The notes: generated by a model not told the origin, from the letters alone. Positions 1 through 29,966 are shown, counted from the first letter of the stretch. The stretch: 64,000 nt of DNA from Rebecca billardiae RCC1528 (GCA_965240325.2 OZ251223.1:3782001-3846000); one strand, 5' to 3'. A program made the numbers and translations.

Positions 1-107
1 TCCGACCGGCGCCGCGCGCGCCGGATGCTGAGCCTGGCGCGCGGCGCCGCGGGGAATGACGCGGGGACCGTGGCGCTCGAAGCTGCCGGGCGACGCCAGC
101 TGACCTC

Positions 108-146
<39 letters not shown>

Positions 147-3100
147 TGTCGACGATGACTGCCACACCGGTGGAGGGCAGGACCGCCGCGCGCGCCGCCG
201 CCTCGCGACCATGCCGGCGCTCGCAGGTGCACCGGCCTGGCTGCGCCGCTCGGAGGATCGGCCGGACGGGCTTGGCGGCGACGGTGAGCGCCGCCGCCTC
301 GACCATCGCCGCCGCCGGCTCAGCGGTGATGACGACGACGACGACGACGACGGTGGCTTTGACATGTGCACCGATGCGGAAGCGACGATCGCATGTGACG
401 CGTGTGACTCGCCAGCGTCGCCCCCGCCGCCTCCAAGCCCACCGCCGCCGCCACCGCCCGTGCGCCCGCCACCGTCTCCCCCCTCGCCGCCGCCGCCGCC
501 ACCATCGCCGGCGCCGCCGCCACCAAGCCCGCCACCGAGCCCGCCGCCGCCACCGCCGCCGAGCCCGCCGCCGCCCCAACCGCCGGCGCAACCGCCACCG
601 AGCTCGCCGCCACCGAGCTTGCCGCCGCCACCGCCGCCGAGCCCGCCGCCGCCCCAACCGCCGGCGCAACCGCCACCCAGCGCGCCGCCACCGAGCCCGC
701 CGCCCAGCCCTCCACCGCCGAGCCCGCCGCCGCCACCGCCGCCATCGCCGCCGCCGTCGCCGCCGCCGTCGCCGCCGCCGCCCAGCTCACCACCGCCACC
801 ACCGCCGTCGCCGCCACCCAGCCCGCCCCCAAGCCCGCCACCGCCGAGCCCGCCGCCGCCGCCGCCGCCATCGCCGCCGCCGTCGCCACCGCCGCCCAGC
901 TCGCCACCGCCGCCACCACCGTCGCCGCCGCCAAGCCCGCCCCCGTCTCCGCCACCGCCCAGCCCGCCGCCGCCACCACCGCCATCGCCGCCGCCTTCGC
1001 CACCGCCGCCCAGCTCGCCACCGCCGCCACCGCCGTCGCCTCCGCCGAGCCCGCCGCCCAGCCCGCCGCCGCCCAGCCCGCCACCGCCGCCGCCGCCATC
1101 GCCGCCGCCCTCGCCACCGCCGCCCAGCTCGCCACCGCCGCCACCGCCGTCGCCTCCGCCGAGCCCGCCGCCCAGCCCGCCGCCGCCATCCCCGCCGCCG
1201 CCACCGCCGCCGTCGCCGCCGCCGTCGCCGCCGCCACCCAGCTCGCCACCGCCGCCACCGCCGTCGCCTCCGCCGAGCCCGCCGCCCAGCCCGCCACCGC
1301 CCAGCCCGCCGCCGCCGCCGCCGCCATCGCCGCCGCCATCGCCACCGCCGCCCAGCTCGCCGCCTCCGCCACCGCCGTCGCCACCACCGAGCCCGCCGCC
1401 GAGCCCTCCACCGCCGAGCCCGCCACCGCCACCGCCGCCATCTCCGCCGCCCTCGCCGCCCCCACCCAGCTCGCCACCGCCGCCACCACCGTCGCCGCCA
1501 CCAAGCCCGCCTCCGTCTCCGCCACCGCCCAGCCCGCCGCCGCCGCCGCCGCCATCGCCGCCGCCGTCGCCACCGCCGCCCAGCTCGCCACCGCCGCCAC
1601 CGCCGTCGCCTCCGCCGAGCCCGCCGCCCAGCCCGCCACCGCCCAGCCCGCCGCCGCCGCCGCCGCCATCGCCGCCGCCATCGCCACCGCCGCCCAGCTC
1701 ACCACCGCCGCCACCGCCGTCGCCGCCTCCGAGCCCGCCTCCGTCTCCGCCACCGCCGAGCCCGCCGCCGCCACCGCCGCCATCGCCGCCGCCGTCGCCA
1801 CCACCGCCCAGCTCGCCGCCTCCGCCACCGCCGTCGCCACCACCGAGCCCGCCGCCCAGCCCTCCACCGCCGAGCCCGCCGCCGCCACCGCCGCCATCTC
1901 CGCCGCCCTCGCCGCCCCCACCCAGCTCGCCACCGCCGCCACCACCGTCGCCGCCACCAAGCCCGCCTCCGTCTCCGCCACCGCCCAGCCCGCCGCCGCC
2001 GCCGCCGCCATCGCCGCCGCCGTCGCCACCGCCGCCCAGCTCGCCACCGCCGCCACCGCCATCGCCTCCGCCGAGCCCGCCTCCGTCTCCGCCACCGCCG
2101 AGCCCGCCGCCGCCACCACCGCCATCGCCGCCGCCGTCGCCACCGCCGCCCAGCTCGCCACCGCCGCCACCGCCGTCGCCGCCTCCGAGCCCGCCTCCGT
2201 CTCCGCCACCGCCGAGCCCGCCGCCGCCACCACCGCCATCGCCGCCGCCGTCGCCACCACCGCCCAGCTCGCCGCCTCCGCCACCGCCGTCGCCTCCGCC
2301 GAGCCCGCCTCCGTCTCCGCCACCGCCGAGCCCGCCGCCGCCACCACCGCCATCGCCGCCGCCGTCGCCACCGCCTCCCAGCTCGCCGCCGCCGCCACCG
2401 CCGTCGCCTCCGCCGAGCCCGCCGCCCAGCCCTCCACCGCCGAGCCCGCCACCGCCACCGCCGCCATCTCCGCCGCCCTCGCCGCCCCCACCCAGCTCGC
2501 CACCGCCGCCACCACCGTCGCCGCCACCAAGCCCGCCTCCGTCTCCGCCACCGCCCAGCCCGCCGCCGCCGCCGCCGCCATCGCCGCCGCCATCGCCACC
2601 GCCGCCCAGCTCACCACCGCCGCCACCGCCGTCGCCGCCTCCGAGCCCGCCTCCGTCTCCGCCACCGCCGAGCCCGCCGCCGCCACCGCCGCCATCGCCG
2701 CCGCCGTCGCCACCACCGCCCAGCTCGCCGCCTCCGCCACCGCCGTCGCCACCACCGAGCCCGCCGCCCAGCCCTCCACCGCCGAGCCCGCCGCCGCCAC
2801 CGCCGCCATCTCCGCCGCCCTCGCCGCCCCCACCCAGCTCGCCACCGCCGCCACCACCGTCGCCGCCACCAAGCCCGCCTCCGTCTCCGCCACCGCCCAG
2901 CCCGCCGCCGCCGCCGCCGCCATCGCCGCCGCCGTCGCCACCGCCGCCCAGCTCGCCACCGCCGCCACCGCCGTCGCCTCCGCCGAGCCCGCCTCCGTCT
3001 CCGCCACCGCCGAGCCCGCCGCCGCCACCACCGCCATCGCCGCCGCCGTCGCCACCGCCGCCCAGCTCGCCGCCGCCGCCACCGCCGTCGCCGCCTCCGA

Positions 3101-6100
3101 GCCCGCCTCCGTCTCCGCCACCGCCGAGCCCGCCGCCGCCACCACCGCCATCGCCGCCGCCGTCGCCACCACCGCCCAGCTCGCCGCCTCCGCCACCGCC
3201 GTCGCCTCCGCCGAGCCCGCCTCCGTCTCCGCCACCGCCGAGCCCGCCGCCGCCACCACCGCCATCGCCGCCGCCGTCGCCACCGCCTCCCAGCTCGCCG
3301 CCGCCGCCACCGCCGTCGCCTCCGCCGAGCCCGCCGCCCAGCCCTCCACCGCCGAGCCCGCCACCGCCACCGCCGCCATCTCCCCCGCCCTCGCCGCCCC
3401 CACCCAGCTCGCCACCGCCGCCACCACCGTCGCCGCCACCAAGCCCGCCTCCGTCTCCGCCACCGCCCAGCCCGCCGCCGCCGCCGCCGCCATCGCCGCC
3501 GCCGTCGCCACCGCCGCCCAGCTCACCACCGCCGCCACCGCCGTCGCCGCCACCGAGCCCGCCTCCGTCTCCGCCACCGCCCAGCCCGCCGCCGCCACCA
3601 CCGCCATCGCCGCCGCCGTCGCCACCGCCACCCAGCTCGCCACCGCCGCCACCGCCGTCGCCACCGCCGAGCCCGCCTCCGTCTCCGCCACCGCCGAGCC
3701 CGCCGCCGCCACCACCGCCATCGCCGCCGCCGTCGCCACCGCCGCCCAGCTCACCACCGCCGCCACCGCCGTCGCCTCCGCCGAGCCCGCCGCCCAGCCC
3801 GCCGCCGCCATTCCCGCCGCCGCCGCCGCCGCCATCGCCGCCACCGTCGCCACCACCGCCCAGCTCACCACCGCCGCCACCGCCGTCGCCTCCGCCGAGC
3901 CCGCCGCCAAGCCCACCACCGCCGAGCCCGCCGCCGCCGCCGCCGCCATCGCCGCCGCCATCGCCACCGCCGCCCAGCTCGCCGCCTCCGCCACCGCCGT
4001 CGCCACCACCGAGCCCGCCGCCCAGCCCTCCACCGCCGAGCCCGCCACCGCCACCGCCGCCATCGCCGCCGCCCTCGCCGCCCCCACCCAGCTCGCCACC
4101 GCCGCCACCACCGTCGCCGCCACCAAGCCCGCCTCCGTCTCCGCCACCGCCCAGCCCGCCGCCGCCGCCGCCGCCATCGCCGCCGCCGTCGCCACCGCCG
4201 CCCAGCTCACCACCGCCGCCACCGCCGTCGCCTCCGCCGAGCCCGCCGCCGAGCCCGCCTCCGCCGAGCCCGCCACCGCCACCACCGCCATCGCCGCCGC
4301 CGTCGCCGCCCCCACCCAGCTCGCCACCGCCGCCACCGCCGTCGCCACCGCCGAGCCCGCCTCCGTCTCCGCCACCGCCCAGCCCGCCTCCGCCGCCGCC
4401 GCCATCGCCGCCGCCGTCGCCACCGCCGCCCAGCTCACCACCGCCGCCACCGCCGTCGCCTCCGCCGAGCCCGCCGCCGAGCCCGCCTCCGCCGAGCCCG
4501 CCACCGCCACCACCGCCATCGCCGCCGCCGTCGCCACCGCCACCCAGCTCGCCACCGCCGCCACCGCCGTCGCCACCGCCGAGCCCGCCTCCGTCTCCGC
4601 CACCGCCCAGCCCGCCTCCGCCGCCGCCGCCATCGCCGCCGCCGTCGCCGCCGCCGCCCAGCTCGCCGCCGCCGCCACCGCCGTCGCCTCCGCCGAGCCC
4701 GCCGCCGTCTCCGCCACCGCCGAGCCCGCCGCCACCGCCGCCGCCGTCGCCACCGCCATCTCCACCGCCGAGTCCGCCACCACCGAGCCCTCCTCCGCCG
4801 CCTCCACCGTCACCGCCGCCTTCTCCCCCTCCAAGCCCGCCACCACCGAGCCCGCCGCCGCCACCGCCGCCGTCGCCGCCGCCGTCGCCACCGCCGCCCA
4901 GCTCGCCACCGCCGCCACCGCCGTCGCCTCCGCCGAGCCCGCCGCCCAGCCCACCGCCACCATCCCCGCCGCCGCCCCCGCCGCCATCGCCGCCGCCGTC
5001 GCCGCCGCCGCCCAGCTCGCCACCACCGCCACCACCATCGCCGCCGCCGAGCCCGCCGCCGTCTCCGCCACCGCCATCTCCGCCGCCGCCACCGCCGCCA
5101 TCGCCGCCGCCGTCGCCACCACCGCCCAGCTCGCCACCACCGCCACCACCATCGCCGCCGCCCAGCCCGCCGCCGTCTCCGCCACCGCCATCTCCGCCGC
5201 CGCCACCGCCGCCATCGCCGCCGCCGTCGCCACCACCGCCCAGCTCGCCGCCTCCGCCACCGCCATCGCCGCCGCCGAGCCCGCCTCCGTCCCCGCCACC
5301 GCCGAGCCCGCCGCCCCCTCCGCCGCCATCGCCGCCGCCGTCGCCACCACCGCCCAGCTCGCCGCCGCCGCCACCGCCGTCGCCGCCGCCGAGCCCTCCG
5401 CCCAGCCCGCCGCCGCCATCCCCGCCGCCGCCGCCGCCGCCATCCCCGCCGCCGTCGCCACCACCGCCCAGCTCGCCGCCGCCGCCACCGCCGTCGCCGC
5501 CGCCGAGCCCTCCGCCCAGCCCGCCGCCGCCATCCCCGCCGCCGCCGCCGCCGCCATCGCCGCCGCCGTCGCCGCCGCCGCCCAGCTCGCCACCACCGCC
5601 ACCGCCGTCGCCGCCGCCGAGCCCTCCGCCCAGCCCGCCGCCGCCATCCCCGCCGCCGCCGCCGCCGCCATCGCCTCCGCCGTCGCCACCGCCACCCAGC
5701 TCGCCACCGCCGCCACCGCCGTCGCCACCGCCGAGCCCGCCTCCGTCTCCGCCACCGCCCAGCCCGCCTCCGCCGCCGCCGCCATCGCCGCCGCCGTCGC
5801 CGCCGCCGCCCAGCTCGCCGCCGCCGCCACCGCCGTCGCCTCCGCCGAGCCCGCCGCCGTCTCCGCCACCGCCGAGCCCGCCGCCACCGCCGCCGCCGTC
5901 GCCACCGCCATCTCCACCGCCGAGTCCGCCACCACCGAGCCCTCCTCCGCCGCCTCCACCGTCACCGCCGCCTTCTCCCCCTCCAAGCCCGCCACCACCG
6001 AGCCCGCCGCCGCCACCGCCGCCGTCGCCGCCGCCGTCGCCACCGCCGCCCAGCTCGCCACCGCCGCCACCGCCGTCGCCTCCGCCGAGCCCGCCGCCCA

Positions 6101-9100
6101 GCCCACCGCCACCATCCCCGCCGCCGCCCCCGCCGCCATCGCCGCCGCCGTCGCCGCCGCCGCCCAGCTCGCCACCACCGCCACCACCATCGCCGCCGCC
6201 GAGCCCGCCGCCGTCTCCGCCACCGCCATCTCCGCCGCCGCCACCGCCGCCATCGCCGCCGCCGTCGCCACCACCGCCCAGCTCGCCACCACCGCCACCA
6301 CCATCGCCGCCGCCCAGCCCGCCGCCGTCTCCGCCACCGCCATCTCCGCCGCCGCCACCGCCGCCATCGCCGCCGCCGTCGCCACCACCGCCCAGCTCGC
6401 CGCCTCCGCCACCGCCATCGCCGCCGCCGAGCCCGCCTCCGTCCCCGCCACCGCCGAGCCCGCCGCCCCCTCCGCCGCCGTCGCCGCCGCCGTCGCCACC
6501 GCCGCCCAGCTCGCCACCGCCGCCACCGCCGTCGCCTCCGCCGAGCCCGCCGCCCAGCCCACCGCCACCATCCCCGCCGCCGCCCCCGCCGCCATCGCCG
6601 CCGCCGTCGCCGCCGCCGCCCAGCTCGCCACCACCGCCACCACCATCGCCGCCGCCGAGCCCGCCGCCGTCTCCGCCACCGCCATCTCCGCCGCCGCCAC
6701 CGCCGCCATCGCCGCCGCCGTCGCCACCACCGCCCAGCTCGCCACCACCGCCACCACCATCGCCGCCGCCCAGCCCGCCGCCGTCTCCGCCACCGCCATC
6801 TCCGCCGCCGCCACCGCCGCCATCGCCGCCGCCGTCGCCACCACCGCCCAGCTCGCCGCCTCCGCCACCGCCATCGCCGCCGCCGAGCCCGCCTCCGTCC
6901 CCGCCACCGCCGAGCCCGCCGCCCCCTCCGCCGCCATCGCCGCCGCCGTCGCCACCACCGCCCAGCTCGCCGCCGCCGCCACCGCCGTCGCCGCCGCCGA
7001 GCCCTCCGCCCAGCCCGCCGCCGCCATCCCCGCCGCCGCCGCCGCCGCCATCCCCGCCGCCGTCGCCACCACCGCCCAGCTCGCCGCCGCCGCCACCGCC
7101 GTCGCCGCCGCCGAGCCCTCCGCCCAGCCCGCCGCCGCCATCCCCGCCGCCGCCACCGCCGCCATCGCCGCCGCCGTCGCCGCCGCCGCCCAGCTCGCCA
7201 CCACCGCCACCGCCGTCGCCGCCGCCGAGCCCGCCGCCGAGCCCGCCACCGCCATCCCCGCCGCCGCCGCCGCCGCCATCGCCTCCGCCGTCGCCACCAC
7301 CGCCCAGCTCGCCACCGCCGCCACCACCGTCGCCACCGCCGAGCCCGCCGCCGAGCCCGCCACCGCCGAGCCCGCCGCCGCCACCGCCGCCATCGCCGCC
7401 GCCGTCGCCGCCGCCGCCCAGCTCGCCACCGCCGCCACCACCATCGCCGCCGCCGAGCCCGCCGCCGAGCCCGCCGCCGCCATCTCCGCCGCCGCCACCG
7501 CCGCCATCACCGCCGCCGTCGCCGCCACCGCCCAGCTCGCCACCGCCGCCACCGCCGTCGCCGCCGCCGAGCCCGCCGCCGTCTCCGCCACCGCCGAGCC
7601 CGCCGCCCCCTCCGCCGCCATCGCCGCCGCCGTCGCCACCACCGCCCAGCTCGCCGCCTCCGCCGCCGCCGTCGCCGCCGCCGAGCCCGCCGCCGTCTCC
7701 GCCACCGCCGAGCCCGCCGCCGCCTCCGCCGCCATCGCCGCCGCCGTCGCCACCACCGCCCAGCTCGCCGCCTCCGCCACCGCCGTCGCCGCCGCCGAGC
7801 CCTCCGCCCAGCCCGCCGCCGCCATCCCCGCCGCCGCCGCCGCCGCCATCGCCGCCGCCGTCGCCACCACCGCCCAGCTCGCCGCCTCCGCCACCGCCGT
7901 CGCCGCCGCCGAGCCCTCCGCCCAGCCCGCCGCCGCCATCCCCGCCGCCGCCGCCGCCGCCATCGCCGCCGCCGTCGCCACCACCGCCCAGCTCACCACC
8001 GCCGCCACCGCCCTCGCCGCCGCCGAGTCCGCCGCCCAGCCCGCCGCCGCCATCTCCGCCGCCGCCACCGCCGCCATCGCCGCCGCCGTCGCCACCACCG
8101 CCCAGCTCACCACCGCCGCCACCGCCGTCGCCGACGCCGAGCCCGCCGCCGTCTCCGCCACCGCCGAGCCCGCCGCCGCCTCCGCCGCCATCGCCGCCGC
8201 CGTCGCCACCACCGCCCAGCTCGCCGCCTCCGCCACCGCCGTCGCCGCCGCCGAGCCCTCCGCCCAGCCCGCCGCCGCCATCCCCGCCGCCGCCCCCGCC
8301 GCCATCGCCGCCGCCGTCGCCACCACCGCCCAGCTCGCCGCCTCCGCCACCGCCATCGCCGCCGCCGAGCCCGCCGCCGTCTCCGCCACCGCCATCTCCG
8401 CCGCCGCCACCGCCGCCATCGCCGCCGCCGTCGCCACCACCGCCCAGCTCGCCGCCTCCGCCACCGCCATCGCCGCCGCCGAGCCCGCCTCCGTCCCCGC
8501 CACCGCCGAGCCCGCCGCCCCCTCCGCCGCCATCGCCGCCGCCGTCGCCACCACCGCCCAGCTCGCCGCCTCCGCCACCGCCGTCGCCGCCGCCGAGCCC
8601 TCCGCCCAGCCCGCCGCCGCCATCCCCGCCGCCGCCGCCGCCGCCATCGCCGCCGCCGTCGCCACCACCGCCCAGCTCGCCGCCTCCGCCACCGCCATCG
8701 CCGCCGCCGAGCCCGCCGCCGTCTCCGCCACCGCCATCTCCGCCGCCGCCCCCGCCGCCATCGCCGCCGCCGTCGCCACCACCGCCCGGCTCGCCGCCTC
8801 CGCCACCGCCATCGCCGCCGCCGAGCCCGCCTCCGTCCCCGCCACCGCCGAGCCCGCCGCCCCCTCCGCCGCCATCGCCGCCGCCGTCGCCACCACCGCC
8901 CAGCTCGCCGCCGCCGCCACCGCCGTCGCCGCCGCCGAGCCCTCCGCCCAGCCCTCCGCCGCCATCCCCGCCGCCGCCGCCGCCGCCATCGCCGCCGCCG
9001 TCGCCGCCGCCGCCCAGCTCGCCACCGCCGCCACCACCATCGCCGCCGCCGAGCCCGCCGCCGAGCCCGCCGCCGCCATCTCCGCCGCCACCACCGCCGC

Positions 9101-15100: not shown

Positions 15101-18100
15101 CCACCACCGCCCAGCTCGCCGCCGCCGCCACCGCCCTCGCCGCCGCCGAGCCCGCCTCCGTCTCCGCCACCGCCGAGCCCGCCGCCGCCCCCGCCGCCAT
15201 CGCCACCGCCGTCGCCACCACCGCCCAGCTCGCCACCGCCGCCACCGCCGTCGCCGCCTCCGAGCCCGCCGCCGAGCCCGCCGCCGCCATCTCCGCCGCC
15301 GCCGCCGCCGCCATCGCCGCCGCCGTCGCCTCCGCCACCCAGCTCGCCGCCGCCGCCCCCGCCGTCGCCGCCGCCAAGCCCGCCCCCAAGCCCGCCTCCG
15401 CCGAGCCCGCCGCCGCCGCCGCCGCCATCGCCACCGCCGTCGCCTCCGCCACCCAGCTCGCCACCGCCGCCACCGCCGTCGCCGCCTCCGAGCCCGCCTC
15501 CGTCTCCGCCACCGCCGAGCCCGCCGCCGCCGCCGCCGCCGTCGCCGCCTCCATCGCCTCCGCCACCCAGCTCGCCACCGCCGCCACCGCCCTCGCCGCC
15601 GCCGAGCCCTCCGCCGAGCCCGCCGCCGCCATCACCGCCGCCACCACCGCCGCCATCGCCGCCGCCGTCGCCACCACCGCCCAGCTCGCCGCCCCCGCCA
15701 CCACCGTCGCCGCCGCCGAGCCCGCCTCCGTCTCCGCCTCCGCCGAGCCCGCCGCCGCCCCCGCCGCCATCGCCGCCGCCATCGCCACCACCGAGTCCAC
15801 CACCACCGAGCCCTCCTCCGCCGCCTCCACCGTCACCGCCGCCTTCTCCCCCTCCAAGCCCGCCACCGCCGAGCCCACCGCCGCCACCGCCGCCATCTCC
15901 ACCACCGTCGCCACCACCGCCCAGCTCGCCACCGCCGCCACCGCCCTCGCCGCCGCCGAGCCCTCCGCCGAGCCCGCCGCCGCCATCACCGCCGCCGCCA
16001 CCGCCGCCATCGCCGCCGCCGTCGCCACCACCGCCCAGCTCGCCGCCCCCGCCACCACCGTCGCCGCCGCCGAGCCCGCCTCCGTCTCCGCCACCGCCGA
16101 GCCCGCCACCGCCGCCGCCGCCATCCCCGCCGCCATCGCCACCACCGAGTCCACCACCACCGAGCCCTCCTCCGCCGCCTCCACCGTCACCGCCGCCTTC
16201 TCCCCCTCCAAGCCCGCCACCACCGAGCCCGCCGCCGCCACCGCCGCCATCTCCACCACCGTCGCCACCACCGCCCAGCTCGCCACCGCCGCCACCGCCG
16301 TCGCCGCCGCCGAGCCCTCCGCCGAGCCCGCCGCCGCCATCACCGCCACCGCCACCGCCGCCATCGCCGCCTCCGTCGCCACCACCGCCCAGCTCGCCGC
16401 CGCCGCCACCGCCGTCGCCGCCGCCGAGCCCGCCTCCGTCTCCGCCACCGCCGAGCCCGCCACCGCCGCCGCCGCCATCCCCGCCGCCGCCACCGCCGCC
16501 ATCGCCGCCTCCGTCGCCACCACCGCCCAGCTCACCACCGCCGCCACCGCCGTCGCCGCCTCCGAGCCCGCCTCCGTCTCCGCCACCGCCGAGCCCGCCG
16601 CCGCCCCCGCCGCCATCGCCACCGCCGTCGCCACCACCGCCCAGCTCGCCGCCGCCGCCACCGCCCTCGCCGCCGCCGAGCCCGCCTCCGTCTCCGCCAC
16701 CGCCGAGCCCGCCGCCGCCCCCGCCGCCATCGCCACCGCCGTCGCCACCACCGCCCAGCTCGCCACCGCCGCCACCGCCGTCGCCGCCTCCGAGCCCGCC
16801 GCCGAGCCCGCCGCCGCCATCTCCGCCGCCGCCGCCGCCGCCATCGCCGCCGCCGTCGCCTCCGCCACCCAGCTCGCCGCCGCCGCCCCCGCCGTCGCCG
16901 CCGCCAAGCCCGCCCCCAAGCCCGCCTCCGCCGAGCCCGCCGCCGCCGCCGCCGCCATCGCCACCGCCGTCGCCTCCGCCACCCAGCTCGCCACCGCCGC
17001 CACCGCCGTCGCCGCCTCCGAGCCCGCCTCCGTCTCCGCCACCGCCGAGCCCGCCGCCGCCGCCGCCGCCGTCGCCGCCTCCATCGCCTCCGCCACCCAG
17101 CTCGCCACCGCCGCCACCGCCCTCGCCGCCGCCGAGCCCTCCGCCGAGCCCGCCGCCGCCATCACCGCCGCCACCACCGCCGCCATCGCCGCCGCCGTCG
17201 CCACCACCGCCCAGCTCGCCGCCCCCGCCACCACCGTCGCCGCCGCCGAGCCCGCCTCCGTCTCCGCCTCCGCCGAGCCCGCCGCCGCCCCCGCCGCCAT
17301 CGCCGCCGCCATCGCCACCACCGAGTCCACCACCACCGAGCCCTCCTCCGCCGCCTCCACCGTCACCGCCGCCTTCTCCCCCTCCAAGCCCGCCACCGCC
17401 GAGCCCACCGCCGCCACCGCCGCCATCTCCACCACCGTCGCCACCACCGCCCAGCTCGCCACCGCCGCCACCGCCCTCGCCGCCGCCGAGCCCTCCGCCG
17501 AGCCCGCCGCCGCCATCACCGCCGCCGCCACCGCCGCCATCGCCGCCGCCGTCGCCACCACCGCCCAGCTCGCCGCCCCCGCCACCACCGTCGCCGCCGC
17601 CGAGCCCGCCTCCGTCTCCGCCACCGCCGAGCCCGCCACCGCCGCCGCCGCCATCCCCGCCGCCATCGCCACCACCGAGTCCACCACCACCGAGCCCTCC
17701 TCCGCCGCCTCCACCGTCACCGCCGCCTTCTCCCCCTCCAAGCCCGCCACCACCGAGCCCGCCGCCGCCACCGCCGCCATCTCCACCACCGTCGCCACCA
17801 CCGCCCAGCTCGCCACCGCCGCCACCGCCGTCGCCGCCGCCGAGCCCTCCGCCGAGCCCGCCGCCGCCATCACCGCCACCGCCACCGCCGCCATCGCCGC
17901 CTCCGTCGCCACCACCGCCCAGCTCGCCGCCGCCGCCACCGCCGTCGCCGCCGCCGAGCCCGCCTCCGTCTCCGCCACCGCCGAGCCCGCCACCGCCGCC
18001 GCCGCCATCCCCGCCGCCATCGCCACCACCGAGTCCACCACCACCGAGCCCTCCTCCGCCGCCTCCACCGTCACCGCCGCCTTCTCCCCCTCCAAGCCCG

Positions 18101-18916
18101 CCACCACCGAGCCCGCCGCCGCCACCGCCGCCATCTCCACCACCGTCGCCACCACCGCCCAGCTCGCCACCGCCGCCACCGCCCTCGCCGCCGCCGAGCC
18201 CTCCGCCGAGCCCGCCGCCGCCATCACCGCCGCCGCCACCGCCGCCATCGCCGCCGCCGTCGCCACCACCGCCCAGCTCGCCGCCCCCGCCACCACCGTC
18301 GCCGCCGCCGAGCCCGCCTCCGTCTCCGCCACCGCCGAGCCCGCCACCGCCGCCGCCGCCATCCCCGCCGCCATCGCCACCACCGAGTCCACCACCACCG
18401 AGCCCTCCTCCGCCGCCTCCACCGTCACCGCCGCCTTCTCCCCCTCCAAGCCCGCCACCACCGAGCCCGCCGCCGCCACCGCCGCCATCTCCACCACCGT
18501 CGCCACCACCGCCCAGCTCGCCACCGCCGCCACCGCCGTCGCCGCCGCCGAGCCCTCCGCCGAGCCCGCCGCCGCCATCACCGCCACCGCCACCGCCGCC
18601 ATCGCCGCCTCCGTCGCCACCACCGCCCAGCTCGCCGCCGCCGCCACCGCCGTCGCCGCCGCCGAGCCCGCCTCCGTCTCCGCCACCGCCGAGCCCGCCA
18701 CCGCCGCCGCCGCCATCCCCGCCGCCGTCTCCACCGCCGAGTCCACCACCACCGAGCCCTCCTCCGCCGCCTCCACCGTCACCGCCGCCTTCTCCGCCTC
18801 CAAGCCCGCCACCACCGAGCCCGCCGCCGCCACCGCCACCATCGCCGCCGCCGTCGCCACCACCGCCCAGCTCGCCACCGCCGCCACCGCCGTCGCCGCC
18901 GCCGAGCCCGCCGCCG

Positions 18917-18949
<33 letters not shown>

Positions 18950-19807
18950 CCGCCATCGCCGCCGCCGTCGCCTCCGCCACCCAGCTCGCCGCCGCCGCCA
19001 CCGCCGTCGCCGCCGCCGAGCCCGCCCCCAAGCCCGCCACCGCCGAGCCCGCCGCCGCCACCACCACCATCGCCGCCTCCATCGCCTCCGCCACCCAGCT
19101 CGCCACCGCCGCCACCGCCGTCGCCGCCTCCGAGCCCGCCTCCGTCTCCGCCACCGCCGAGCCCGCCGCCGCCGCCGCCGCCGTCGCCGCCGCCGTCTCC
19201 ACCGCCGAGTCCACCACCACCGAGCCCACCACCGCCACCGCCGCCTTCGCCGCCACCTATGCCCCCGCCGAGCCCACCGCCGCCGAGCCCTCCGCCGCCC
19301 CCGCCGCCCTCGCCGCCACCTATGCCACCGCCAAGCCCGCCGCCGCCGAGCCCTCCGCCACCCCCGCCGCCCTCGCCACCACCGATGCCACCGCCAAGCC
19401 CTCCGCCGCCGAGCCCTCCGCCGCCCCCGCCGCCCTCGCCGCCGCCGAGCCCGCCACCCGCGCCACCCGCGCCACCCCCGCCATGCAACGGCAACGGGGC
19501 AGTTCAGGCGACTGCGTACTCGGGCGGTCCTCCGACGGGCTACTCGTGCGTGCCGGACGACAAGGCGCCTCCCCGGCCGCGCGTGTCGAGTGTGCCTGAC
19601 GTGGTGGGTGCGCGTGACGAGGACGAGTGCGCTGCCGCGCTGTACAGCGCGTGCTCGGTGTTCAGCTTCTGGGCGGACACGGGCGAGTGCTACTGCTGCC
19701 CGGGCACGTTCACGCTCTACCCGCGCCCGTTTGCATCGCTGTGGGAGTCGGAGTGGGTCTGCCCGCCACCGCCTGCACCGCCGAGCCCGCCGCCGAGCCC
19801 GCCGCCG

Positions 19808-19840
<33 letters not shown>

Positions 19841-21460
19841 CCACCGATGCCACCGCCAAGCCCGCCGCCGCCGAGCCCTCCGCCGCCCCCGCCGCCCTCG
19901 CCACCACCTATGCCGCCTCCAAGCCCTCCACCGCCCAGCCCACCGCCGCCACCACCGCCTTCGCCGCCACCGATGCCACCGCCGAGCCCGCCGCCGCCCA
20001 GCCCTCCGCCGCCCCCGCCGCCCTCGCCACCACCTATGCCGCCTCCAAGCCCTCCACCACCCAGCCCACCGCCGCCACCACCGCCTTCGCCGCCACCGAG
20101 CCCGCCTCCGTCTCCGCCACCGCCGAGCCCGCCGCCACCCCCGCCGCCCTCGCCACCACCGATGCCACCTCCAAGCCCGCCGCCGCCCAGCCCTCCGCCG
20201 CCCCCGCCGCCCTCGCCACCACCGATGCCACCGCCAAGCCCGCCGCCGCCGAGCCCACCGCCGCCACCACCGCCTTCGCCGCCACCTATGCCCCCGCCGA
20301 GCCCGCCGCCGCCGAGCCCTCCGCCTCCCCCGCCGCCCTCGCCACCACCTATGCCGCCTCCAAGCCCTCCACCGCCCAGCCCTCCGCCGCCACCACCGCC
20401 TTCGCCGCCACCGATGCCACCGCCAAGCCCGCCACCGCCCAGCCCACCGCCGCCACCGCCGCCATCACCGCCACCGATGCCACCGCCAAGCCCGCCGCCG
20501 CCGAGCCCACCGCCGCCACCACCGCCTTCGCCGCCACCGATGCCCCCGCCGAGCCCGCCGCCGCCGAGCCCGCCGCCGCCCCCGCCGCCCTCGCCACCAC
20601 CGACGCCACCGCCAAGCCCTCCACCGCCCAGCCCACCGCCGCCACCACCGCCTTCGCCGCCACCTAAGCCCCCGCCGAGCCCGCCGCCGCCGAGCCCTCC
20701 GCCTCCCCCGCCGCCCTCGCCACCACCTATGCCGCCTCCAAGCCCTCCACCACCCAGCCCACCGCCGCCACCACCGCCTTCGCCGCCACCTAAGCCCCCG
20801 CCGAGCCCGCCGCCGCCGAGCCCTCCGCCTCCCCCGCCGCCCTCGCCACCACCTATGCCGCCTCCAAGCCCTCCACCACCCAGCCCACCGCCGCCACCAC
20901 CGCCTTCGCCGCCGCCGATGCCACCGCCCTCGCCCCCACCGCCCGCGGATGGCGGCGGCGGCCCTGGCGGCCCTGCGCCGCCACCCTCGCCGCCGCCCTC
21001 GCCACCGCCCTCGCCGCCGCCGCCTCCGTCACCGCCGCCGAGCCCGCCGCCGCCACCCCCGCCATGCAACGGCAACGGGGCAGTTCAGGCGACTGCGTAC
21101 TCGGGCGGTCCTCCGACGGGCTACTCGTGCGTGCCGGACGACAAGGCGCCTCCCCGGCCGCGCGTGTCGAGTGTGCCTGACGTGGTGGGTGCGCGTGACG
21201 AGGACGAGTGCGCTGCCGCGCTGTACAGCGCGTGCTCGGTGTTCAGCTTCTGGGCGGACACGGGCGAGTGCTACTGCTGCCCGGGCACGTTCACGCTCTA
21301 CCCGCGCGCGTTTGCATCGCTGTGGGAGTCGGAGTGGGTCTGCCCGCCGCCTCCGTCACCACCGCCCTCGCCCCCACCGCCCGCGGATGGCGGTGGCGGC
21401 CCTGGCGGCCCTGCACCGCCGCCGTCGCCGCCACCGTCGCCGCCGCCGGCGCCGCCGCCG

Positions 21461-21493
<33 letters not shown>

Positions 21494-24400
21494 CCACCCT
21501 CGCCGCCACCCTCGCCGCCACCCTCGCCACCGCCCTCGCCGCCGCCCTCGCCGCCGCCCTCGCCGCCGCCGAGCCCGCCGCCGCCGTCGGCCGTCGGCAG
21601 CGGCGCTGCCGAGCCCGCCCCGCCGCCCTCGCCGCCTCCGCCCGGCGACTGGATCGCGGAGGCGGTGGAGGCGCTGCTCGACCTGGGCGTGCTGCCGGAC
21701 GAGACGACCGACGCCTCCAGCGCGAGCCTCGGCGGCGTGGACGGCGGCCCCGGCGGCCTGGACGAGGCGTACGGCGAGGCGACCTACCGCGCCGACCGGA
21801 TCAACGAGGCGGTGGAGGACTTCATCTCGAGCCGGCTGGGCACGCTCGCGCCGGGCGAGACGTTCTCCACGACGGTGGACACGCAGCACGGCACCGCGGG
21901 CGTCACGCTGCGGGAGGTCGACCCGTCGACGTTTGGGCTGAGCGACCTGGTGGTCGTCTCGCCCGTGGTGCCCGTCGCCGACGACACCGCCGCCGCCACG
22001 TTCACGATCCCCGTGTCCACGCTCGAATTCATGCTGGGCCGCGGCATGCTCAACATCTCCAACTTCTCCGACATCCGCGAGATGCATATCTCGGTCGTGC
22101 TGTGGGAGAACAACTTCCGCGCGTTCGCGCCGCTCGAGGGGTACGCGCTCACGGACACGCTCACGAGCGTGGTCGTGTGGCTCAACGGCGCGCCGCTCAA
22201 GGTGGACTTCACGCAGTTCACGCAGCCGGGCGAGGCGCCGCCGGTCGTGCTGATCGAGCTGCCCGTCGACCCGGCCGAGCTGCCGCGCGACAACCAGGAC
22301 GGCTTCAGCTGCCGCTTCTGGGGCGGCGCGGCGTGGGACAGCGCGGGCTGCGTGGACGTGGGCGACCCCTTCGACGGCACCGTGCAGTGCGAGTGCACGC
22401 ACCTCACAGACTTCATCGCCGTGTACGAGGCGACGGCCGCGCTCACGGAGGACCCGTCGGTCGCGTCCACCGACCCGCCGCTCGAGGTGAACCAGATCAC
22501 GCTGGCGGAGGTCAACTTCTCGTACACGGCGCTGGTGATCCTGTTTGCGCTGCTGCTCACGTACCTCTCGCTCTACTACTGCGCGCACAGGCACGACCGG
22601 CACATCGAGCGCGAGCCGTTCGTGCCGCTGTGGAAGCGCAAGGAGGACGCCGGGCTGTGCTACGCGCTCGGCGCCGCGCTGATCGCGCGCTCGACCGTCT
22701 CGTGGTGGCTCGCGCGGCTGCCGGGCGAGCTGGACACGTCGCGGCAGCGCGTGACGGTGCTGTACAACACGCTGCTCGCCGAGCTGCTCCTCGTCGCGGT
22801 GTTCATCGGGCAGGACAACTCGCTCGCGCACCAGGTGCTCATGCTCGCCGCGGTCTCGATCGCGGCGGGCGTGCCCTTCGAGTTCGCCATCCACTTCCTC
22901 TTCCGCTGGGCGAACCGGCGCCGCCCGCTGCACCGGCTCAAGCGGCGGCTGATCAAAAAGTACAGCCGCGAGCTCAAGCACGAGACGCTGTGGCGCCGCT
23001 TCTGCGGCTGCTGCCGCTGCGCGCTGCCGTTCCGGCTGGCGGTCACGAAGCGCGAGGAGACGCCCTTCACGGCGGTCGGGCCGCCGCCGCCGCCGCCGCC
23101 AGCCGCGTCGCCGCCACCGAGCCCGCCGCCGCCGTCTCGTGCGCAGGGCACGCGCCTCGGCTCGCTCGTCGAGCGAGCGCGCGCGCAGCAGGCGGGCGCC
23201 GAGGTGGGCGCCGACGACCGGTCGGATTCGGATGACGAGGGCCCGACGTCCACCGCGCCCACCGCCGTGCGCGCCGCGCGCGGGCGCCGCGCGTCGGACC
23301 TCGGCCTGCCGGAGGACTGGCGCGACCTGATCGAAGAGCTGATCGCCGACGAGGACGACGAGAGTGAGACGTCGTCGGCCGTGCTGCCGCGCGGGCTGTC
23401 GTCGCGCAGCAACACGGCCTCCGAGGTCTCGGCGCCGTCGTACGGCGGCGCCGACGTGAAGGCCCTCGGCGCGCTGACCGATGACGGCAGCAGCGTGCCG
23501 CTCGCGCTGCTCACCAACGCGCACAAGCTGCTGTACGTCTGCCCGTCCAAGGTGGGCATCGCGCCGCGCAACGGCGAGCAGCTCGGCGACCTCGGCTCGC
23601 GCGACTCGATCCGGATGCCGGCCAAGGCGCTCATGTCCGTGCACACGCGCCGCGGCGAGATGGTCGGCTTCTTCGTGCACGTGGGCGTGGCGGACGCGAC
23701 CGAGGTGGCGCGGCAGCGCTTCCTCGAGCAGCGCGCCGCGATGGCGCGCCGCCGCCGCGGCCTCGTCAACCAGATCATGGGCACCGTCATGCCCGTGCGA
23801 CGCGCGCGGCAGGCGCACGTGGGCCACGGCGACGACGAGGGCGCGACGACGGAGCTCGGCCACACCTCGCACGCGGAGTACCGGCCGGCGCACGTACCCG
23901 ACCTGCGCTTCGTGCAGGCGCACCTCGTGTACCAGGCGGCCGACGCGCCCGCCAGCCAGGTGGCCACGCGCTACTACCACCTCAAGCCAAAGGCGGCCGC
24001 GCGGCTCGCCAAGAAGCGCAGCGCGATGGTGCACGTCGTGCCCTTCGGCTCGCCCTTTGTCGACGGCCGGCGCGTCGTCACCGACGACCTCTTCTGCGAG
24101 CCCGACGTGGCGCGTGCGCAGCTGCTCGCCTCGTACGAGAAGAAGCGGCACGAGCCCGTGATGCCCGCGACGCGCGCCCCGGCAGCGCCGCCAGTCGCGG
24201 CGCCCGCGACCGCCGCTCCCGGCGCTGCCGATGACGAGGTGGACTCGACGACGGCCGAGATCTGGGGCCACGCGCCTCGCGCCGCGCGCGCTGCGCCGCC
24301 GGCGGCTGCGCCGCCCTCGCCCACGCGCCGCCGCCTGCCCGGGCTGTTGTCGGACGTGTCCGAGGTCGAGGCGTACGCGCGCATCGACGAGAAGTCGCTC

Positions 24401-24739
24401 AAGGACGCAAAGCTGTGGTGGTCGATGCCGCGGCGGTGGAAGGTGCTGCTCGCGTGGAGCATGCACGCCATCCTCGGCATCGGCATGTGCGCAGTGATCA
24501 TCCTCTACTCGCTCACAAACCCCATCCTCAGGGACGTCGCCACGTGGTCGGGCCCGCTCGCCTCTACGCTTGTGCAGGCGCAGCTGATCAAGCTGGTCGT
24601 GATGGAGCCGGCCGTGGCGTTCGCGTCGCCCATCGCCAAGTTTGCGCTCCGGTGCCTGCCCGAGGAGGTGCAGGACATGATCACCGAGTACGTCATTGCA
24701 CCCATCACCCGGCTCTTCAATCTGTGCACATTCCAGTGA
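1..24739 (+). CDS. Giant (>8,170 aa) extensin-like Ser-Pro-rich cell-surface protein with GAIN/GPS domain and polycystin-1-like TM1-5. Exons <1/25-10116, 10228-10250, 10342-24739; probably 5'-partial.
   Basis: The frame is open from base 1. Splice sites AAG|GTAAGC (10117), GCGCAG|(10227), GG|GTGAGC (10251) and GCGCAG|(10341) join ORF 25..10155 to ORF 10265..24739 in frame (..PCTK-ANCGTLGG-RNIFFAGES). GPS motif CRFWGGAAWDSAGC..VQCECTHL|TDF at 22310-22414 is followed by five hydrophobic segments resembling PKD1 TM1-5. Confidence 0.85.
420..9315 (+). repeat. Coding tandem array 1: 114-bp unit encoding SSPPPPPPSPPPSPPPSPPPPSPPPPPPPSPPPSPPPP (38 aa), about 70+ copies
   Basis: The marker CCCAGCTC recurs at 781, 895, 1009... 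(period 114). Variation is almost entirely synonymous. Confidence 0.95.
10874..19483 (+). repeat. Coding tandem array 2: same 38-aa/114-bp unit, about 70 copies, with 354-bp higher-order repeats
   Basis: Same unit as array 1. The marker CCTTCTCCCCCTCCAAGC occurs at 15842, 16196, 17372, 17726, 18080 and 18434. Confidence 0.95.
19484..19762 (+). repeat. Cys-rich 93-aa domain, copy 1 (PAN/apple-like, tentative)
   Basis: CNGNG...DECAAALYSACSVFSFWADTGECYCC...WVC. Near-identical to 21065-21343. Confidence 0.8.
19763..21064 (+). repeat. Coding tandem array 3: 63-bp unit (M/T/K/S)PPPSPPPPSPPPPPPPSPPP
   Basis: A 21-aa period is visible in the ORF translation. Confidence 0.9.
21065..21343 (+). repeat. 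Cys-rich 93-aa domain, copy 2
   Basis: 279-bp duplicate of 19484-19762 at offset 1581. The only difference I can see is C19727/G21308 (Pro/Ala). Confidence 0.85.
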
Positions 24740-26521: not shown

Positions 26522-27334
26522 TCACTTCTGCGCGCCGAGCGACATCTTGCGCAGCATGGGTTCAAGCATCCGTCCCGCCCCCGCACGGCTCATGATGCGC
26601 GTCTGCATGCCCACGATAAAACTGTTCTTGAATCCGGCGACCACGCTGGGCTTGCGGCCAAGCGCCTGGAACGCGATGCGCACGACCTCGTCGGGGCTCA
26701 TGATCGTCATGCCCCCCTTGATGAGATCGGCCTTCATATCCGCGATCATGGGCGTGTCCACCGGTCCGGGCGAGAGCACTGTCACGTCCACATTCTTGTC
26801 CTTCATCTCGACGTGGAGGCTCTCACCAAGCACGAGGATGTACGCCTTGGTGGCGTGGTACTGCGCCATGAATGGGCCGGCCGTGTACCCACTAAGGCTG
26901 CTGATCAGCACGATGGCGCCCCTGTGCCGCGACGCCATGCGACCGCCAAAGTGCCGAGCGAGCTTGGAGGGAGCAGACACATTCAGAAAGTCCATGCGGT
27001 CCGCTGTAGCGGGATCCTGGTCGACGAAGTAGCCCTTGGACTCAACGGCAGCGCAGGGCACGAGGAGGCCGATTTCCAGGTCTTCGGTGCCCGCAATAAT
27101 CGCGTCCACGCCCACCTGCGTCGACGTGTCTGCCTCGACGATGCGCACATCCACCGCATGCGTGGCGCGGATGCTCTGTGCCGTGCTCTCGAGGTTCGCC
27201 GCGCGGCGCGCAACAATCACCACGTTCATACCCGCCGCCGCGCAGTACCGCGCGAATGCTTCCCCGATGCCTGACGATGCACCGATCACGAGGGCCCAGC
27301 CGCCGTACTTGTCCGTCAGGGAAGGATTCGGCAT
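26522..27334 (-). CDS. Short-chain dehydrogenase/reductase (classical SDR), intronless, 270 aa
   Basis: KYGGWALVIGASSGIG Rossmann motif, VARR basic motif (NADP type), catalytic Ser in ISS and YHATK. ATG at 27334. Confidence 0.92.
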   Translation of the reverse strand: MPNPSLTDKYGGWALVIGASSGIGEAFARYCAAAGMNVVIVARRAANLESTAQSIRATHAVDVRIVEADTSTQVGVDAIIAGTEDLEIGLLVPCAAVESKGYFVDQDPATADRMDFLNVSAPSKLARHFGGRMASRHRGAIVLISSLSGYTAGPFMAQYHATKAYILVLGESLHVEMKDKNVDVTVLSPGPVDTPMIADMKADLIKGGMTIMSPDEVVRIAFQALGRKPSVVAGFKNSFIVGMQTRIMSRAGAGRMLEPMLRKMSLGAQK

Positions 27335-28127
27335 GGCGCTTGCAGTGGCGGGGACCAGCACGCGAGCGGCGAGTGTCGGCGTCGAGTGTCGGCAACGAGC
27401 GCGCGGCGGCGTCGAGTCCTCCGCTTGAAAGTTGAAACGGATAACATTTTCAATTTGGCTGATTTAGGCCTTGGCTGCGGCGGCAGGGGAGCCGCTGCGG
27501 CGTAGCTCATGAACAGCGCAGGCAGGTGTTTGGCGCGGCTGCACTCTCGAGGTGGCTGGGATACAACATCCAGGTGCAGCACCCTCCCCGTGTGGTGTCA
27601 GAGTGCGCTCTCGAGCGCGTGCCTCCGAGCGCGGGGCGGCCGCTTGCTGCAATGGCCGCCTCGATGAGGTGCGGCAACGCGCCCGCCTCACCTACTGTCA
27701 CCTGCCTGCGGCGCCGGTCTGTTTTGTGGCAGTGTCTTTGTGCAGTGTTGGATACTTGGATCCGGCGTCAATCACGCCTTCACCAAGTGTGCATGCACTG
27801 TGCATAGCCATACGGTTGGCGGCATACGGGCGTATACACGGGCACGGCGGCACCGGGCGTATATATATATATATATATGCATGCATGCACGCCGCCTGCA
27901 TGCACGCCGCCACGCGGCCTGACGCGCCCTCACGAGTACGGGCTACGGCGCGGCCTCGCGGGCCTCGGCCGGGGCCGCCCGGGGCTCGTCAGCGCTTCCG
28001 ATATATATACCAGGCGGCTTGACAGTTGATGCGGCACGATCGAGTTAGAGTGCGGGATGTCACGGCCACGGCGCACGGGCGCCTGTAGCGATTCAGCCGC
28101 CTCAATTATCGTCCAGCATTGAGCGCG

Positions 28128-29780: not shown

Positions 29781-29966
29781 GCTGACGCGAGGTCGCCGGG
29801 CGGCTCTACCTTGGTACGGGCCCGGAATTCGGCGGACTCCCAGACTTGCCGGACAAGTCCCGGGCGACTCCCCCAGCCCGGCCGTCGTCGGTGCCCACCG
29901 CACTACCGCAGCGGTGAACGTTCACGGGAACACTCACCGCCGACGCCGAGGGCGTCTCCGCCGGCC

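Follow-up and report, generated by a model that had tools for sequence, protein, structure and literature searches.

A giant pavlovophyte membrane protein combining Ser-Pro arrays, a GAIN domain and the five-helix half of polycystin-1

Introduction

Members of the polycystin-1/REJ family, including human PKD1, sea-urchin suREJ and Ectocarpus Esi0130_0068 (PMC4700764), have a GAIN domain whose GPS motif carries the H-L|T site just before the first transmembrane (TM) helix, and polycystin-1 (PC1) has a huge modular ectodomain. Adhesion GPCRs also contain the GAIN fold, followed after the cleavage site by a T-x-F-hydrophobic stalk, and in them a large N-terminal fragment with an adhesive function sits on a signaling base, which in their case is a secretin-like 7TM domain. 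To our knowledge, the TM1-TM5 half of PC1 is always fused in animals to PLAT and a channel-like half, and its role is obscure for this reason; we know of no autonomous signaling function of this bundle.

Polycystin-type anchors and proline-rich rods meet in the Chlamydomonas mastigoneme. Its core protein, MST3 (Mstax), is a giant single-copy protein with long polyproline stretches, whose polyproline-II helices reach hundreds of nanometres, form the axis of the ~0.8-μm flagellar hair and set its length (PMC11015965). MST3 is anchored by part of a polycystin-type membrane protein, namely, a PKD2-like S2-S6 channel subunit that is completed by SIP and has no GAIN/GPS. Extensins and other hydroxyproline-rich glycoproteins (HRGPs) of plants and green algae carry Ser-Pro3-7 motifs in long tandem arrays.

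In this study, we describe a gene in a 64,000-nucleotide stretch of the genome of Rebecca billardiae RCC1528 (hereafter the window) that shares features with each of these systems. The host belongs to the pavlovophyte haptophytes rather than to the plants or green algae, and we found no published description of such a design in the literature.

Results

Gene structure and reading frame

The plus strand of the window, on which all features of the gene lie, contains two giant ORFs at 25-10155 and 10265-24739. They are joined into a single reading frame (25-24739) by two short introns flanking a 23-nt micro-exon: intron 1 (10117-10227, 111 nt, gtaagc...cag, with the donor AAG|gtaagc after 10116), the micro-exon itself (10228-10250), which restores the frame between the two ORFs, and intron 2 (10251-10341, 91 nt, gtgagc...cag, with its acceptor preceding 10342). 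Translation of the splice model showed that the joined CDS is in frame and that its only stop is the terminal one. Counted from the ATG at 25, the product has 8,170 amino acid residues, a mass of ~801 kDa and a proline content of 63%. A contig from a relative, L002, keeps the position of intron 1 and has an identical donor, a micro-exon of 23 nt in the corresponding place and an identical next exon. The original prediction of one spliced frame encoding more than 8,000 residues is thus upheld.

The part of the gene within the window opens with an N-terminal low-complexity region (1-399) containing two poly-Asp/Cys units. The true N-terminus is probably located upstream of the window because the frame is open to position 1 and the ATG at 25 does not lead into a signal peptide. 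At the other end, the C-terminal tail (24650-24739) was read from the sequence to the stop codon at 24737-24739. The relatives stop at the same point, just past TM5, and no plus-strand domain was found in the window downstream of the stop; on sequence grounds, therefore, 24739 is the real end of the protein. The 3' neighbor is a short-chain dehydrogenase gene on the minus strand (26525-27361). Downstream channel or PLAT exons were ruled out, as nothing on the plus strand 3' of the stop would fit. Taken with the family comparisons and predicted folds below, the sequence shows one gene, whose product is a type-I-like membrane glycoprotein with no fewer than 8,170 residues.

Ser-Pro arrays

Three Ser-Pro arrays make up ~77% of the ectodomain. 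Array 1 (400-9342, 2,981 residues) consists of ~78 units of 38 residues (114 nt), a repeat that was read in both the protein and the DNA. Array 2 (10853-19483/19495, ~2,880 residues, measured at 2,881) is built from the same 38-residue unit, and array 3 (19745/19763-20959, ~400 residues, measured at 405) from a 21-residue unit containing Met. The lengths are close to the ~2,960, ~2,870 and ~430 residues predicted originally. The arrays contain Ser-(Pro)3-5 repeats of the extensin/HRGP type, but arrays 1 and 2 have no Tyr and array 1 has no Lys. The earlier description of extensin-like stalks consequently holds for the tandem Ser-Pro motifs and fails for the Tyr/Lys cross-linking motifs, which are missing, and a role as cross-linking extensins was ruled out. 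The protein also differs from extensins in being membrane-anchored rather than wall-embedded and in belonging to a haptophyte. As the host lies outside the green lineage, hydroxylation and glycosylation of the rods, that is, HRGP chemistry, would be an extrapolation by analogy with that lineage. An ExAD-like GT47 has been reported in two haptophytes (PMC5371791).

An ORF scan showed that all of the array frames are open, so that an open frame is by itself weak evidence. Among ~154 units of 38 residues, 130 are identical as protein with a DNA identity of only ~89%, and the differences among these 130 are all synonymous, including AGC<->TCN serine switches. The arrays contain 51 and 33 distinct DNA versions of the unit, the 51 being found in array 1, where 68 units are exact as protein. 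Arrays 1 and 2 have no 100-mer in common, although they encode the same unit, so that an origin of array 2 by segmental duplication of array 1 was rejected. Because protein-identical units differ only synonymously and the two arrays encode one unit without a shared 100-mer, the arrays are evidently coding and under purifying selection.

The same selection, together with 8,170 codons free of internal stops and frameshifts and a set of motifs that are all intact, makes it very improbable that the locus is an assembly artefact, with an inflated or collapsed number of array copies, or a dead gene in the form of an unexpressed recent duplicate. Exact repeats within the arrays reach 1.5 kb (803 nt at the longest in array 1 and 1,508 nt in array 2) and leave room for an error in copy number, but the 51 and 33 unit versions would allow long reads to resolve the units.

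Globular domains and hinges of the ectodomain

The globular domains predicted to be spaced out by the arrays, four in number, were found as a two-part D1, two Cys-rich modules of 93 residues and the GAIN domain. No propeller, LRR or lectin head was found in the window. Neither the N-terminal region nor D1a, D1b, the Cys-rich modules or the cytoplasmic domain had a match in Pfam.

D1 interrupts the rod between arrays 1 and 2. D1a (9343-10116, ~258 residues) is a β-rich globular domain whose exon ends at the donor of intron 1, and D1b (10342-10852, ~170 residues) is likely helical and begins at an exon start, RNIFFAG, that is identical in L002. By ESM Atlas features, D1a falls with unnamed haptophyte clusters, giving a weak adhesin-lectin lead. 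Its one homologue, P0159, is 66% identical across the whole domain, and in P0159/L002, D1a comes straight after a signal peptide, without a preceding array. The placement of D1a, mid-rod here and apparently a signal-peptide-led N-terminal head in P0159, is new for this locus. Since the sole relative of D1 has D1a right after a signal peptide, the first rod may be a recent fusion, or a second gene start may exist.

This arrangement in P0159/L002, and the small weight that an open array frame carries, are what would speak for two separate products: a secreted Ser-Pro protein ending in D1a, made when intron 1 is retained (stop at 10153-10155), or a receptor made from an unseen first exon spliced before D1a, either of which would take the first 0.9-μm rod off the membrane protein. 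We consider this improbable. The selected Ser-Pro frame continues into D1a as the same frame, across a junction that contains neither a stop nor a Met or signal peptide; D1b lacks any start codon or signal peptide from which to begin by itself; and both splice sites are conserved in L002.

Cys-rich module 1 (19484-19762) and module 2 (21065-21343) differ by one residue and belong to a duplicated block that is ~92% identical as DNA. Their ESM Atlas features matched PAN clusters at 0.92-0.93, and all 10 of the 10 best Pfam-bearing Atlas hits were in the PAN family or clan, whereas Pfam itself gave no match at E≤1. These two PAN/Apple-like modules are new for this locus. A Gly-rich hinge, ADGGGGPGGPA, occurs at the end of array 3 (20945-20977) and again (21383-21415) within a short Ser-Pro linker (21344-21643) that leads into the GAIN domain.

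GAIN domain and GPS site

The GAIN domain (21644-22426) has the GPS motif at its end and was recognized by AF2, Foldseek, VIA and Pfam. The Pfam GPS model (PF01825) scored 26.9 bits, above its cut-off of 22.5, and all four Cys (4/4) and both Trp of the motif are present. The AF2 model had a pLDDT of 77-94 over residues 40-262; Foldseek matched it to GAIN structures with E values from 1e-6 to 6e-4, and VIA aligned residues 1/41-264 with eleven solved GAIN domains at Z 12-15.4. The matches include CD97, BAI2/3, GPR126, GPR110, GPR56, CELSR1 and GPR97. The fold that AlphaFold had been proposed to check is accordingly predicted, and the GPS site is intact at exactly the position predicted, with H-L|T at 22400-22408, ~40 residues before TM1. 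HLT is invariant in the relatives P0002, P0012, P0018, P0021, P0022 and P0158. Cleavage at this predicted autoproteolysis site would give the new N-terminus TDFIAVY, which has the T-x-F-hydrophobic form of the adhesion GPCR stalk. The presence of HL|T is not proof of cleavage, as some GAIN domains that bear the motif stay uncleaved.

Membrane base

Five hydrophobic segments follow the GAIN domain, at residues 294-316, 369-390, 397-420, 933-957 and 976-1002 of the C-terminal module. TM1 (22523-22591) is followed by a short cytoplasmic loop with WWLxRLPGE..QR, TM2 (22748-22813) and TM3 (22832-22903), and, after a long loop, TM4 (24440-24514) and TM5 (24569-24649), which contains an invariant Glu and a Pro conserved in at least 90%. 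The positive-inside pattern is compatible with an N-out/C-in orientation.

When the base was compared with 48,161 PDB representative chains using VIA, a single outlier was obtained, 8z6b_A, covering PC1 residues 3068-3610 (TM1-TM5), with Z 16.2, an rmsd of 3.8 Å and 20% identity over 184 aligned residues. The next best match had Z 6.2. The best adhesion-GPCR 7TM domain reached Z 6.2, which together with the count of five hydrophobic segments rules out a 7-TM adhesion-GPCR topology and agrees with the original prediction of five TM-like segments. PC1 and the locus have in common W..R.P...T..QR after TM1, ...FLFR in TM3 and EP in TM5; the motifs noted earlier as resembling TM2, TM3 and TM5 of PC1 all aligned, either directly or via an intermediate. 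That intermediate, the REJ+GPS protein P0021, matched the locus from GPS through TM3 (pairwise E 2e-15) and PC1 at TM2 and TM4-5 (E 2e-4).

The family profile of TM1-3 matched PC1 (6a70_B) at E 0.0076 and presenilin at E 0.002, so that by sequence profile this match does not rise above the noise given by other TM proteins. When PDB sequence profiles were searched, the C-terminal module as a whole gave dopamine-receptor noise only and TM4-5 gave nothing. Foldseek of the post-cleavage fragment found no match in the PDB (E>5); PC1 was not recovered by Foldseek alone. Sequence, comparison and predicted fold together identify the membrane part with the N-terminal five-helix bundle, TM1-TM5, of PC1.

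The remainder of polycystin-1 is missing. There was no REJ match (PF02010, E≤1), and the GAIN domain is immediately preceded by the Ser-Pro linker alone. As originally predicted, there is no PLAT and no TRP-channel half: Pfam gave no PLAT match and the TM1-TM2 loop is only ~53 residues, and no TM6-TM11/TOP/pore half (PKD_channel) was found, the stop falling ~30 residues past TM5. The C-terminal coiled coil of polycystin-1 is also lacking, and the TM3-TM4 loop contains another conserved domain.

The anchor also separates the locus from MST3. There was no PKD_channel match for a PKD2-like S2-S6 region, and by structure the base matches TM1-5 of PC1 instead of the channel half. MST3 is a chlorophyte protein, whereas the locus is from a haptophyte, and no MST1-like sheath is known for it. 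The likeness to MST3 is thus convergent or modular, not orthology, and a green-algal origin as an MST3 orthologue was ruled out by both the organism and the anchor type.

Cytoplasmic loop and relatives

The TM3-TM4 loop (22904-24439) consists of a disordered part followed by a conserved α/β domain of ~200 residues (~23590-24190), which is new for this locus. The domain contains PDLRFVQ, shows conserved blocks across the relatives and was modeled with a pLDDT of 85-95. It had no match in Pfam, PDB sequence profiles or ESM Atlas features, and in the ESM Atlas shape search all matches had TM<0.35. The lack of a fold match for this domain or D1 does not mean a new fold.

A relative, P0001, shows 38% identity over an unbroken alignment that runs from GPS to the C-terminus. 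The family includes one MMETSP transcriptome sequence and one member found in Pavlovales sp. CCMP2436, and judged by these comparisons it is real. The CCMP2436 homologue is annotated as a 454-residue "hypothetical protein" adjoining an N-gap; at this locus (L003), the cytoplasmic domain and TM4-5 are recognizable behind the gap, and nothing further. The stand-alone base also occurs in relatives from metagenomes and in a protein of 7,067 residues that is cryptophyte-like. Some relatives carry Sec7+PH in the equivalent cytoplasmic loop according to Pfam, which makes a signaling role for the base plausible.

Such a role would set the protein apart from a purely structural coat or adhesion protein that forms a glycocalyx, holds knob-scales or sticks to surfaces, with the GAIN domain as a release point only and the base as a non-signaling anchor. 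The dominance of the arrays in the protein, and a base without PLAT, a channel half or any recognizable signaling domain, agree with such a coat. Nevertheless, we regard it as rather unlikely, given that a single TM helix would be sufficient to anchor it, that the five-helix bundle and the cytoplasmic domain are well conserved in relatives of only 25-38% identity, and that Sec7-PH is inserted in the loop of some of them.

Discussion

The most likely reading, which we favor without regarding it as settled, is that the gene encodes a surface or flagellar hair made of a single molecule, in which rods stand on a self-cleaving front half of polycystin-1. From the outside inward, its ectodomain comprises an acidic tip, the 2,981-residue rod, the D1 node, the 2,881-residue rod, a PAN-like module, the 405-residue rod, a second PAN-like module and the GAIN domain. 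The Ser-Pro3-7 arrays would form glycosylated polyproline-II rods, as in MST3, and if extended in this conformation, arrays 1, 2 and 3 would measure ~0.92, ~0.89 and ~0.13 μm, respectively. On this view, a single molecule would stand on the cell or flagellar surface of the pavlovophyte as a filament with joints, up to ~2 μm long. The GAIN domain would cleave itself and keep the filament attached non-covalently. A pull, exerted by flow, by contact or by the binding of prey or a mate at D1, the PAN modules or the tip, might shed the filament or expose the TDFIAVY stalk, and the five-helix base with its cytoplasmic domain could then report the pull inside the cell. We infer the rigidity and length of the rods, the autoproteolysis and the functions proposed here.

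A broader proposal is more speculative, and we offer it tentatively as a possibility that is less likely to hold than to fail. In pavlovophytes, one giant polypeptide might make up each of the fine hairs on the flagella or cell surface, with the array length as a ruler and a self-cleaving, channel-less polycystin-1 half at the foot acting as an autonomous force sensor that is coupled to an Arf-GEF in some relatives. The polycystin-anchored proline hair would then have been invented a second time, independently of MST3, and TM1-5 of PC1 would be an ancient stand-alone signaling module predating its fusion to the channel half.

For annotation, the locus illustrates that short-read assemblies and gene callers truncate genes of this type, as in the 454-residue CCMP2436 homologue. 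For the polycystin family, a stand-alone TM1-TM5 base would allow the function of this half to be studied in isolation. The protein would extend hydroxyproline-type rod proteins beyond the green lineage and could be a second and independent example of one polyproline-rod polypeptide that specifies an extracellular filament on the micrometre scale. Such a protein would by its nature be a "molecular ruler", jointed along its length and breaking at a defined point.

Gene model and N-terminus

Two giant open frames lie on the plus strand at 25–10155 (ORF 1) and 10265–24739 (ORF 2), and both translate into Ser-Pro arrays interrupted by a few ordinary stretches. ORF 1 ends with a classic donor (AAG|gtaagc) after 10116, and the frame of ORF 2 is restored by a 23-nt micro-exon at 10228–10250 (cag|...|gtgagc) together with an acceptor that precedes 10342. 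The joined CDS has 8,170 codons from the ATG at 25 and a single terminal stop, in agreement with the one spliced frame and the product of over 8,000 residues claimed in the original prediction; the predicted product is approximately 801 kDa with 63% Pro and 17% Ser. The same splice layout was found in L002, the contig of the homologous protein P0159, where the same TPCTK precedes the donor and a 23-nt micro-exon, which encodes xxCxxxGG, leads to an exon that opens with the same RNIFFAG; this gives independent support for the joined frame. Because the frame has no stop up to window position 1 and the sequence after the ATG at 25 does not encode a signal peptide, the true N-terminus most likely lies upstream, outside the window. 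Positions 1–399, ahead of array 1, encode a pair of similar units that combine Arg-rich stretches with tracts of 8 to 12 Asp and paired Cys. This region, which extends beyond the window edge, may form a Ca-binding tip.

The downstream neighbor is a minus-strand short-chain dehydrogenase (26525–27361), followed by a BCS1-type AAA ATPase and then SAM domains (29016–32925, plus), a dihydrolipoamide dehydrogenase (36028–37311, minus), an alpha/beta hydrolase (51931–53286, plus), and a PNK3P-type phosphatase (62032–63285, plus). The best named matches of the dihydrolipoamide dehydrogenase, at 80% identity, are from Pavlovales sp. CCMP2436 and Diacronema lutheri, which places the genome among the pavlovophyte haptophytes.

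Ser-Pro arrays

The G+C content is 78 to 85% across 1–24,000, with a strong skew of C over G, and 57 to 71% in the remaining window. A density scan placed arrays 1, 2, and 3 on the plus strand at 400–9342 (2,981 residues), 10853–19495 (2,881 residues), and 19745–20959 (405 residues), close to the lengths first proposed. Tandem Repeats Finder gave a repeat period of 114 nt in both long arrays and 63 nt in array 3. The 38-residue unit is protein-identical in 130 (68 + 62) of approximately 154 units, which are encoded by 51 and 33 DNA versions, respectively, with a mean DNA identity of only 89%. A column-by-column comparison showed that the differences between these 130 units are all synonymous; they fall at third positions of Pro codons, except in three Ser columns where AGC alternates with TCN, a change that requires multiple base substitutions and yet retains serine. 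Judged from the sequence, the Ser-Pro arrays are coding sequence under selection, and the remaining open frames over them, including minus-strand ORFs of approximately 3,000 codons, are by-products of composition. Arrays 1 and 2 share no 100-mers though the encoded unit is identical, and long exact repeats occur within each (up to 803 nt in array 1 and 1,508 nt in array 2), indicating that each array homogenizes separately while the peptide is kept constant.

Residues other than Ser and Pro make up less than 1% of the arrays; Lys is absent from array 1. The description "extensin-like" stands as far as the Ser-Pro arrays are concerned, but the host is a pavlovophyte haptophyte and not a green alga, which changes the meaning of the term, and the arrays contain no Tyr. 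At the rise of 0.31 nm per residue of a polyproline II (PPII) helix, arrays 1, 2, and 3 would reach 0.92, 0.89, and 0.13 μm if they adopted this conformation. Hydroxylation and arabinosylation are plausible by analogy only; an ExAD-like GT47 has been reported from two haptophytes (PMC5371791).

Ectodomain modules

D1a, the first part of the globular domain D1 between arrays 1 and 2, has 66% identity to P0159 and no Pfam match; ESM Atlas features placed it with unnamed haptophyte clusters and, weakly, with lectin-like domains of bacterial adhesins. In P0159, a signal peptide immediately precedes D1a, whereas here (comparison of 9316–10116 with L002 1441–2403) D1a follows the 2,981-residue array, and the junction coincides with the predicted signal-peptide cleavage point of L002 (AQ|F versus PQ|F). 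Thus, D1 serves as a terminal head in P0159 but is, at this locus, a node between two rods that would each be approximately 0.9 μm long as PPII. The signal peptide of P0159 is the best argument that the first rod and the membrane protein are separate products; in the translation, D1b, the second part of D1, has no start of its own, and the splice layout shared with L002 favors a single joined product. The placement of D1 hints at a fusion or an N-terminal extension in this lineage.

Two 93-residue Cys-rich modules differ at a single residue, and their duplicated block is 92% identical in DNA. They resemble PAN/Apple domains by ESM Atlas features alone, and two identical copies of a Gly-rich hinge lie on either side of the second module.

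GAIN domain and GPS

The GPS site HL|T at 22400–22408 is intact where it was originally located; all four Cys and both Trp of the motif are retained, and Pfam matches GPS above the cut-off. In the contig of the best homolog (L001:1–1320/P0001), an intron apparently lies exactly at the HL|T codons, and the gene caller broke the gene there. AlphaFold2 modeled the C-terminal 1,031 residues from a 29-row alignment, with confidence over residues 40–262, 290–455, 650–850, and 900–1030. Foldseek matched the first block to BAI3, BAI2, CD97, CELSR1, GPR110, and GPR56 (E 1e-6 to 6e-4), and VIA gave Z 12 to 15.4 against eleven GAIN structures over residues 1/41–264. On this model, the first block is a GAIN domain, as had been proposed.

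The GAIN model (21644–22426) also matched five axonemal proteins, all components of the 96-nm repeat, from Chlamydomonas, cattle, human, Leishmania, and Trypanosoma (8glv_AE, 9fqr_Hn, 9y6s_9K, 8j07_k3, and 9e5c_5n; Foldseek E 9e-5 to 3e-3). The Chlamydomonas and bovine chains reached a VIA Z of approximately 14 over residues 1–266, equal to true GAIN domains. These modeled matches point to a GAIN-like fold in an intracellular protein of cilia.

Polycystin-1-type membrane base

Hydropathy found the five hydrophobic segments anticipated, and their positive-inside pattern agrees with an N-out/C-in topology. For a second model, restricted to the post-cleavage fragment, structural alignment against each of the 48,161 PDB representatives gave a single outlier, 8z6b_A, polycystin-1 (PC1) of the PC1/PC2 complex (residues 3068–3610; Z 16.2, rmsd 3.8 Å, 184 aligned residues, 20% identity), with the runner-up at Z 6.2; the predicted likeness to PC1 was thereby upheld. 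We take the matched PC1 region to be TM1 through TM5, ending before the channel-like half, in agreement with P0021 and the profile alignments. P0021, a REJ+GPS protein, matches the locus protein from GPS through TM3 (E 2e-15) and PC1 at the TM2 motif and TM4–TM5 (E 2e-4). The family profile matched PC1 with E 0.0076, not better than a presenilin false positive, and the Foldseek search alone missed PC1, so the assignment rests mainly on the structural alignment. Pfam detected no REJ, PLAT, or PKD_channel domain, the TM1–TM2 loop is approximately 53 residues, and the stop lies approximately 30 residues past TM5, as in relatives; the base accordingly has neither PLAT nor a channel half, as originally stated. 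The cytoplasmic domain contains two conserved blocks, PAKAL..GEMVGFFV and PDLRFVQ...CEPD, modeled with pLDDT 85 to 95, and had no match in Pfam, PDB profiles, or the Atlas.

Relatives

Only 32 proteins turned up in an exhaustive HMMER scan covering 1.84 billion representatives, nearly all of them unnamed metagenome or Logan fragments. The best match, P0001, aligns in one stretch from GPS to the C-terminus with 38% identity, so the long TM3–TM4 loop is coding and partly conserved. Among the exceptions, P0009 is an MMETSP transcript, and at least one relative is therefore expressed; P0027, from Pavlovales sp. CCMP2436, is KAJ1621589.1, annotated as a 454-residue "hypothetical protein", and an N-gap lies just upstream of it (MU631734.1, 6636–8044). 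Ser-Pro runs precede the GAIN domain also in L001 and P0012. The rods of the family have probably been lost from short-read assemblies. P0037 (7,067 residues, Logan), which clusters with a protein from Rhodomonas salina, shares the GPS and channel-less five-helix base but carries it below a giant ectodomain without proline enrichment, showing that this "half-polycystin-1" base is not limited to haptophytes. Arf-GEF-type Sec7 domains occur within the TM3–TM4 loop, together with PH, in the metagenomic relatives P0158 and P0013, and after TM5 in a third, P0004, a hint of signaling by the family to Arf GTPases.

Proposed function

The long flagellum of pavlovophytes carries fine non-tubular hairs and knob scales, and short sea-urchin REJ proteins are among the nearest described items to the locus protein. 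Our literature search found no paper on Ser-Pro rods with a GAIN/PC1-half anchor or on stand-alone PC1 TM1–5 proteins. The nearest described systems include the Ectocarpus REJ+GPS male-gamete protein (PMC4700764) and MST3, the core protein of the Chlamydomonas mastigoneme. PPII helices of MST3 extend hundreds of nanometers, and one MST3 per hair sets its length of approximately 0.8 μm and links it to a polycystin-type membrane complex (PMC11015965). From this precedent and the flagellar hairs of pavlovophytes, we suggest that the gene product is probably a single-molecule, jointed hair or tether, in which GAIN would be the break point and the PC1-type half the foot. Of this picture, the architecture is demonstrated, and the PPII state, glycosylation, cleavage, location, and signaling are inferred. 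The tethered-stalk model for PC1 and adhesion GPCRs (PMC9171645, PMC11458180) suggests by analogy that pulling would either release the filament or uncover the TDFIAVY stalk.
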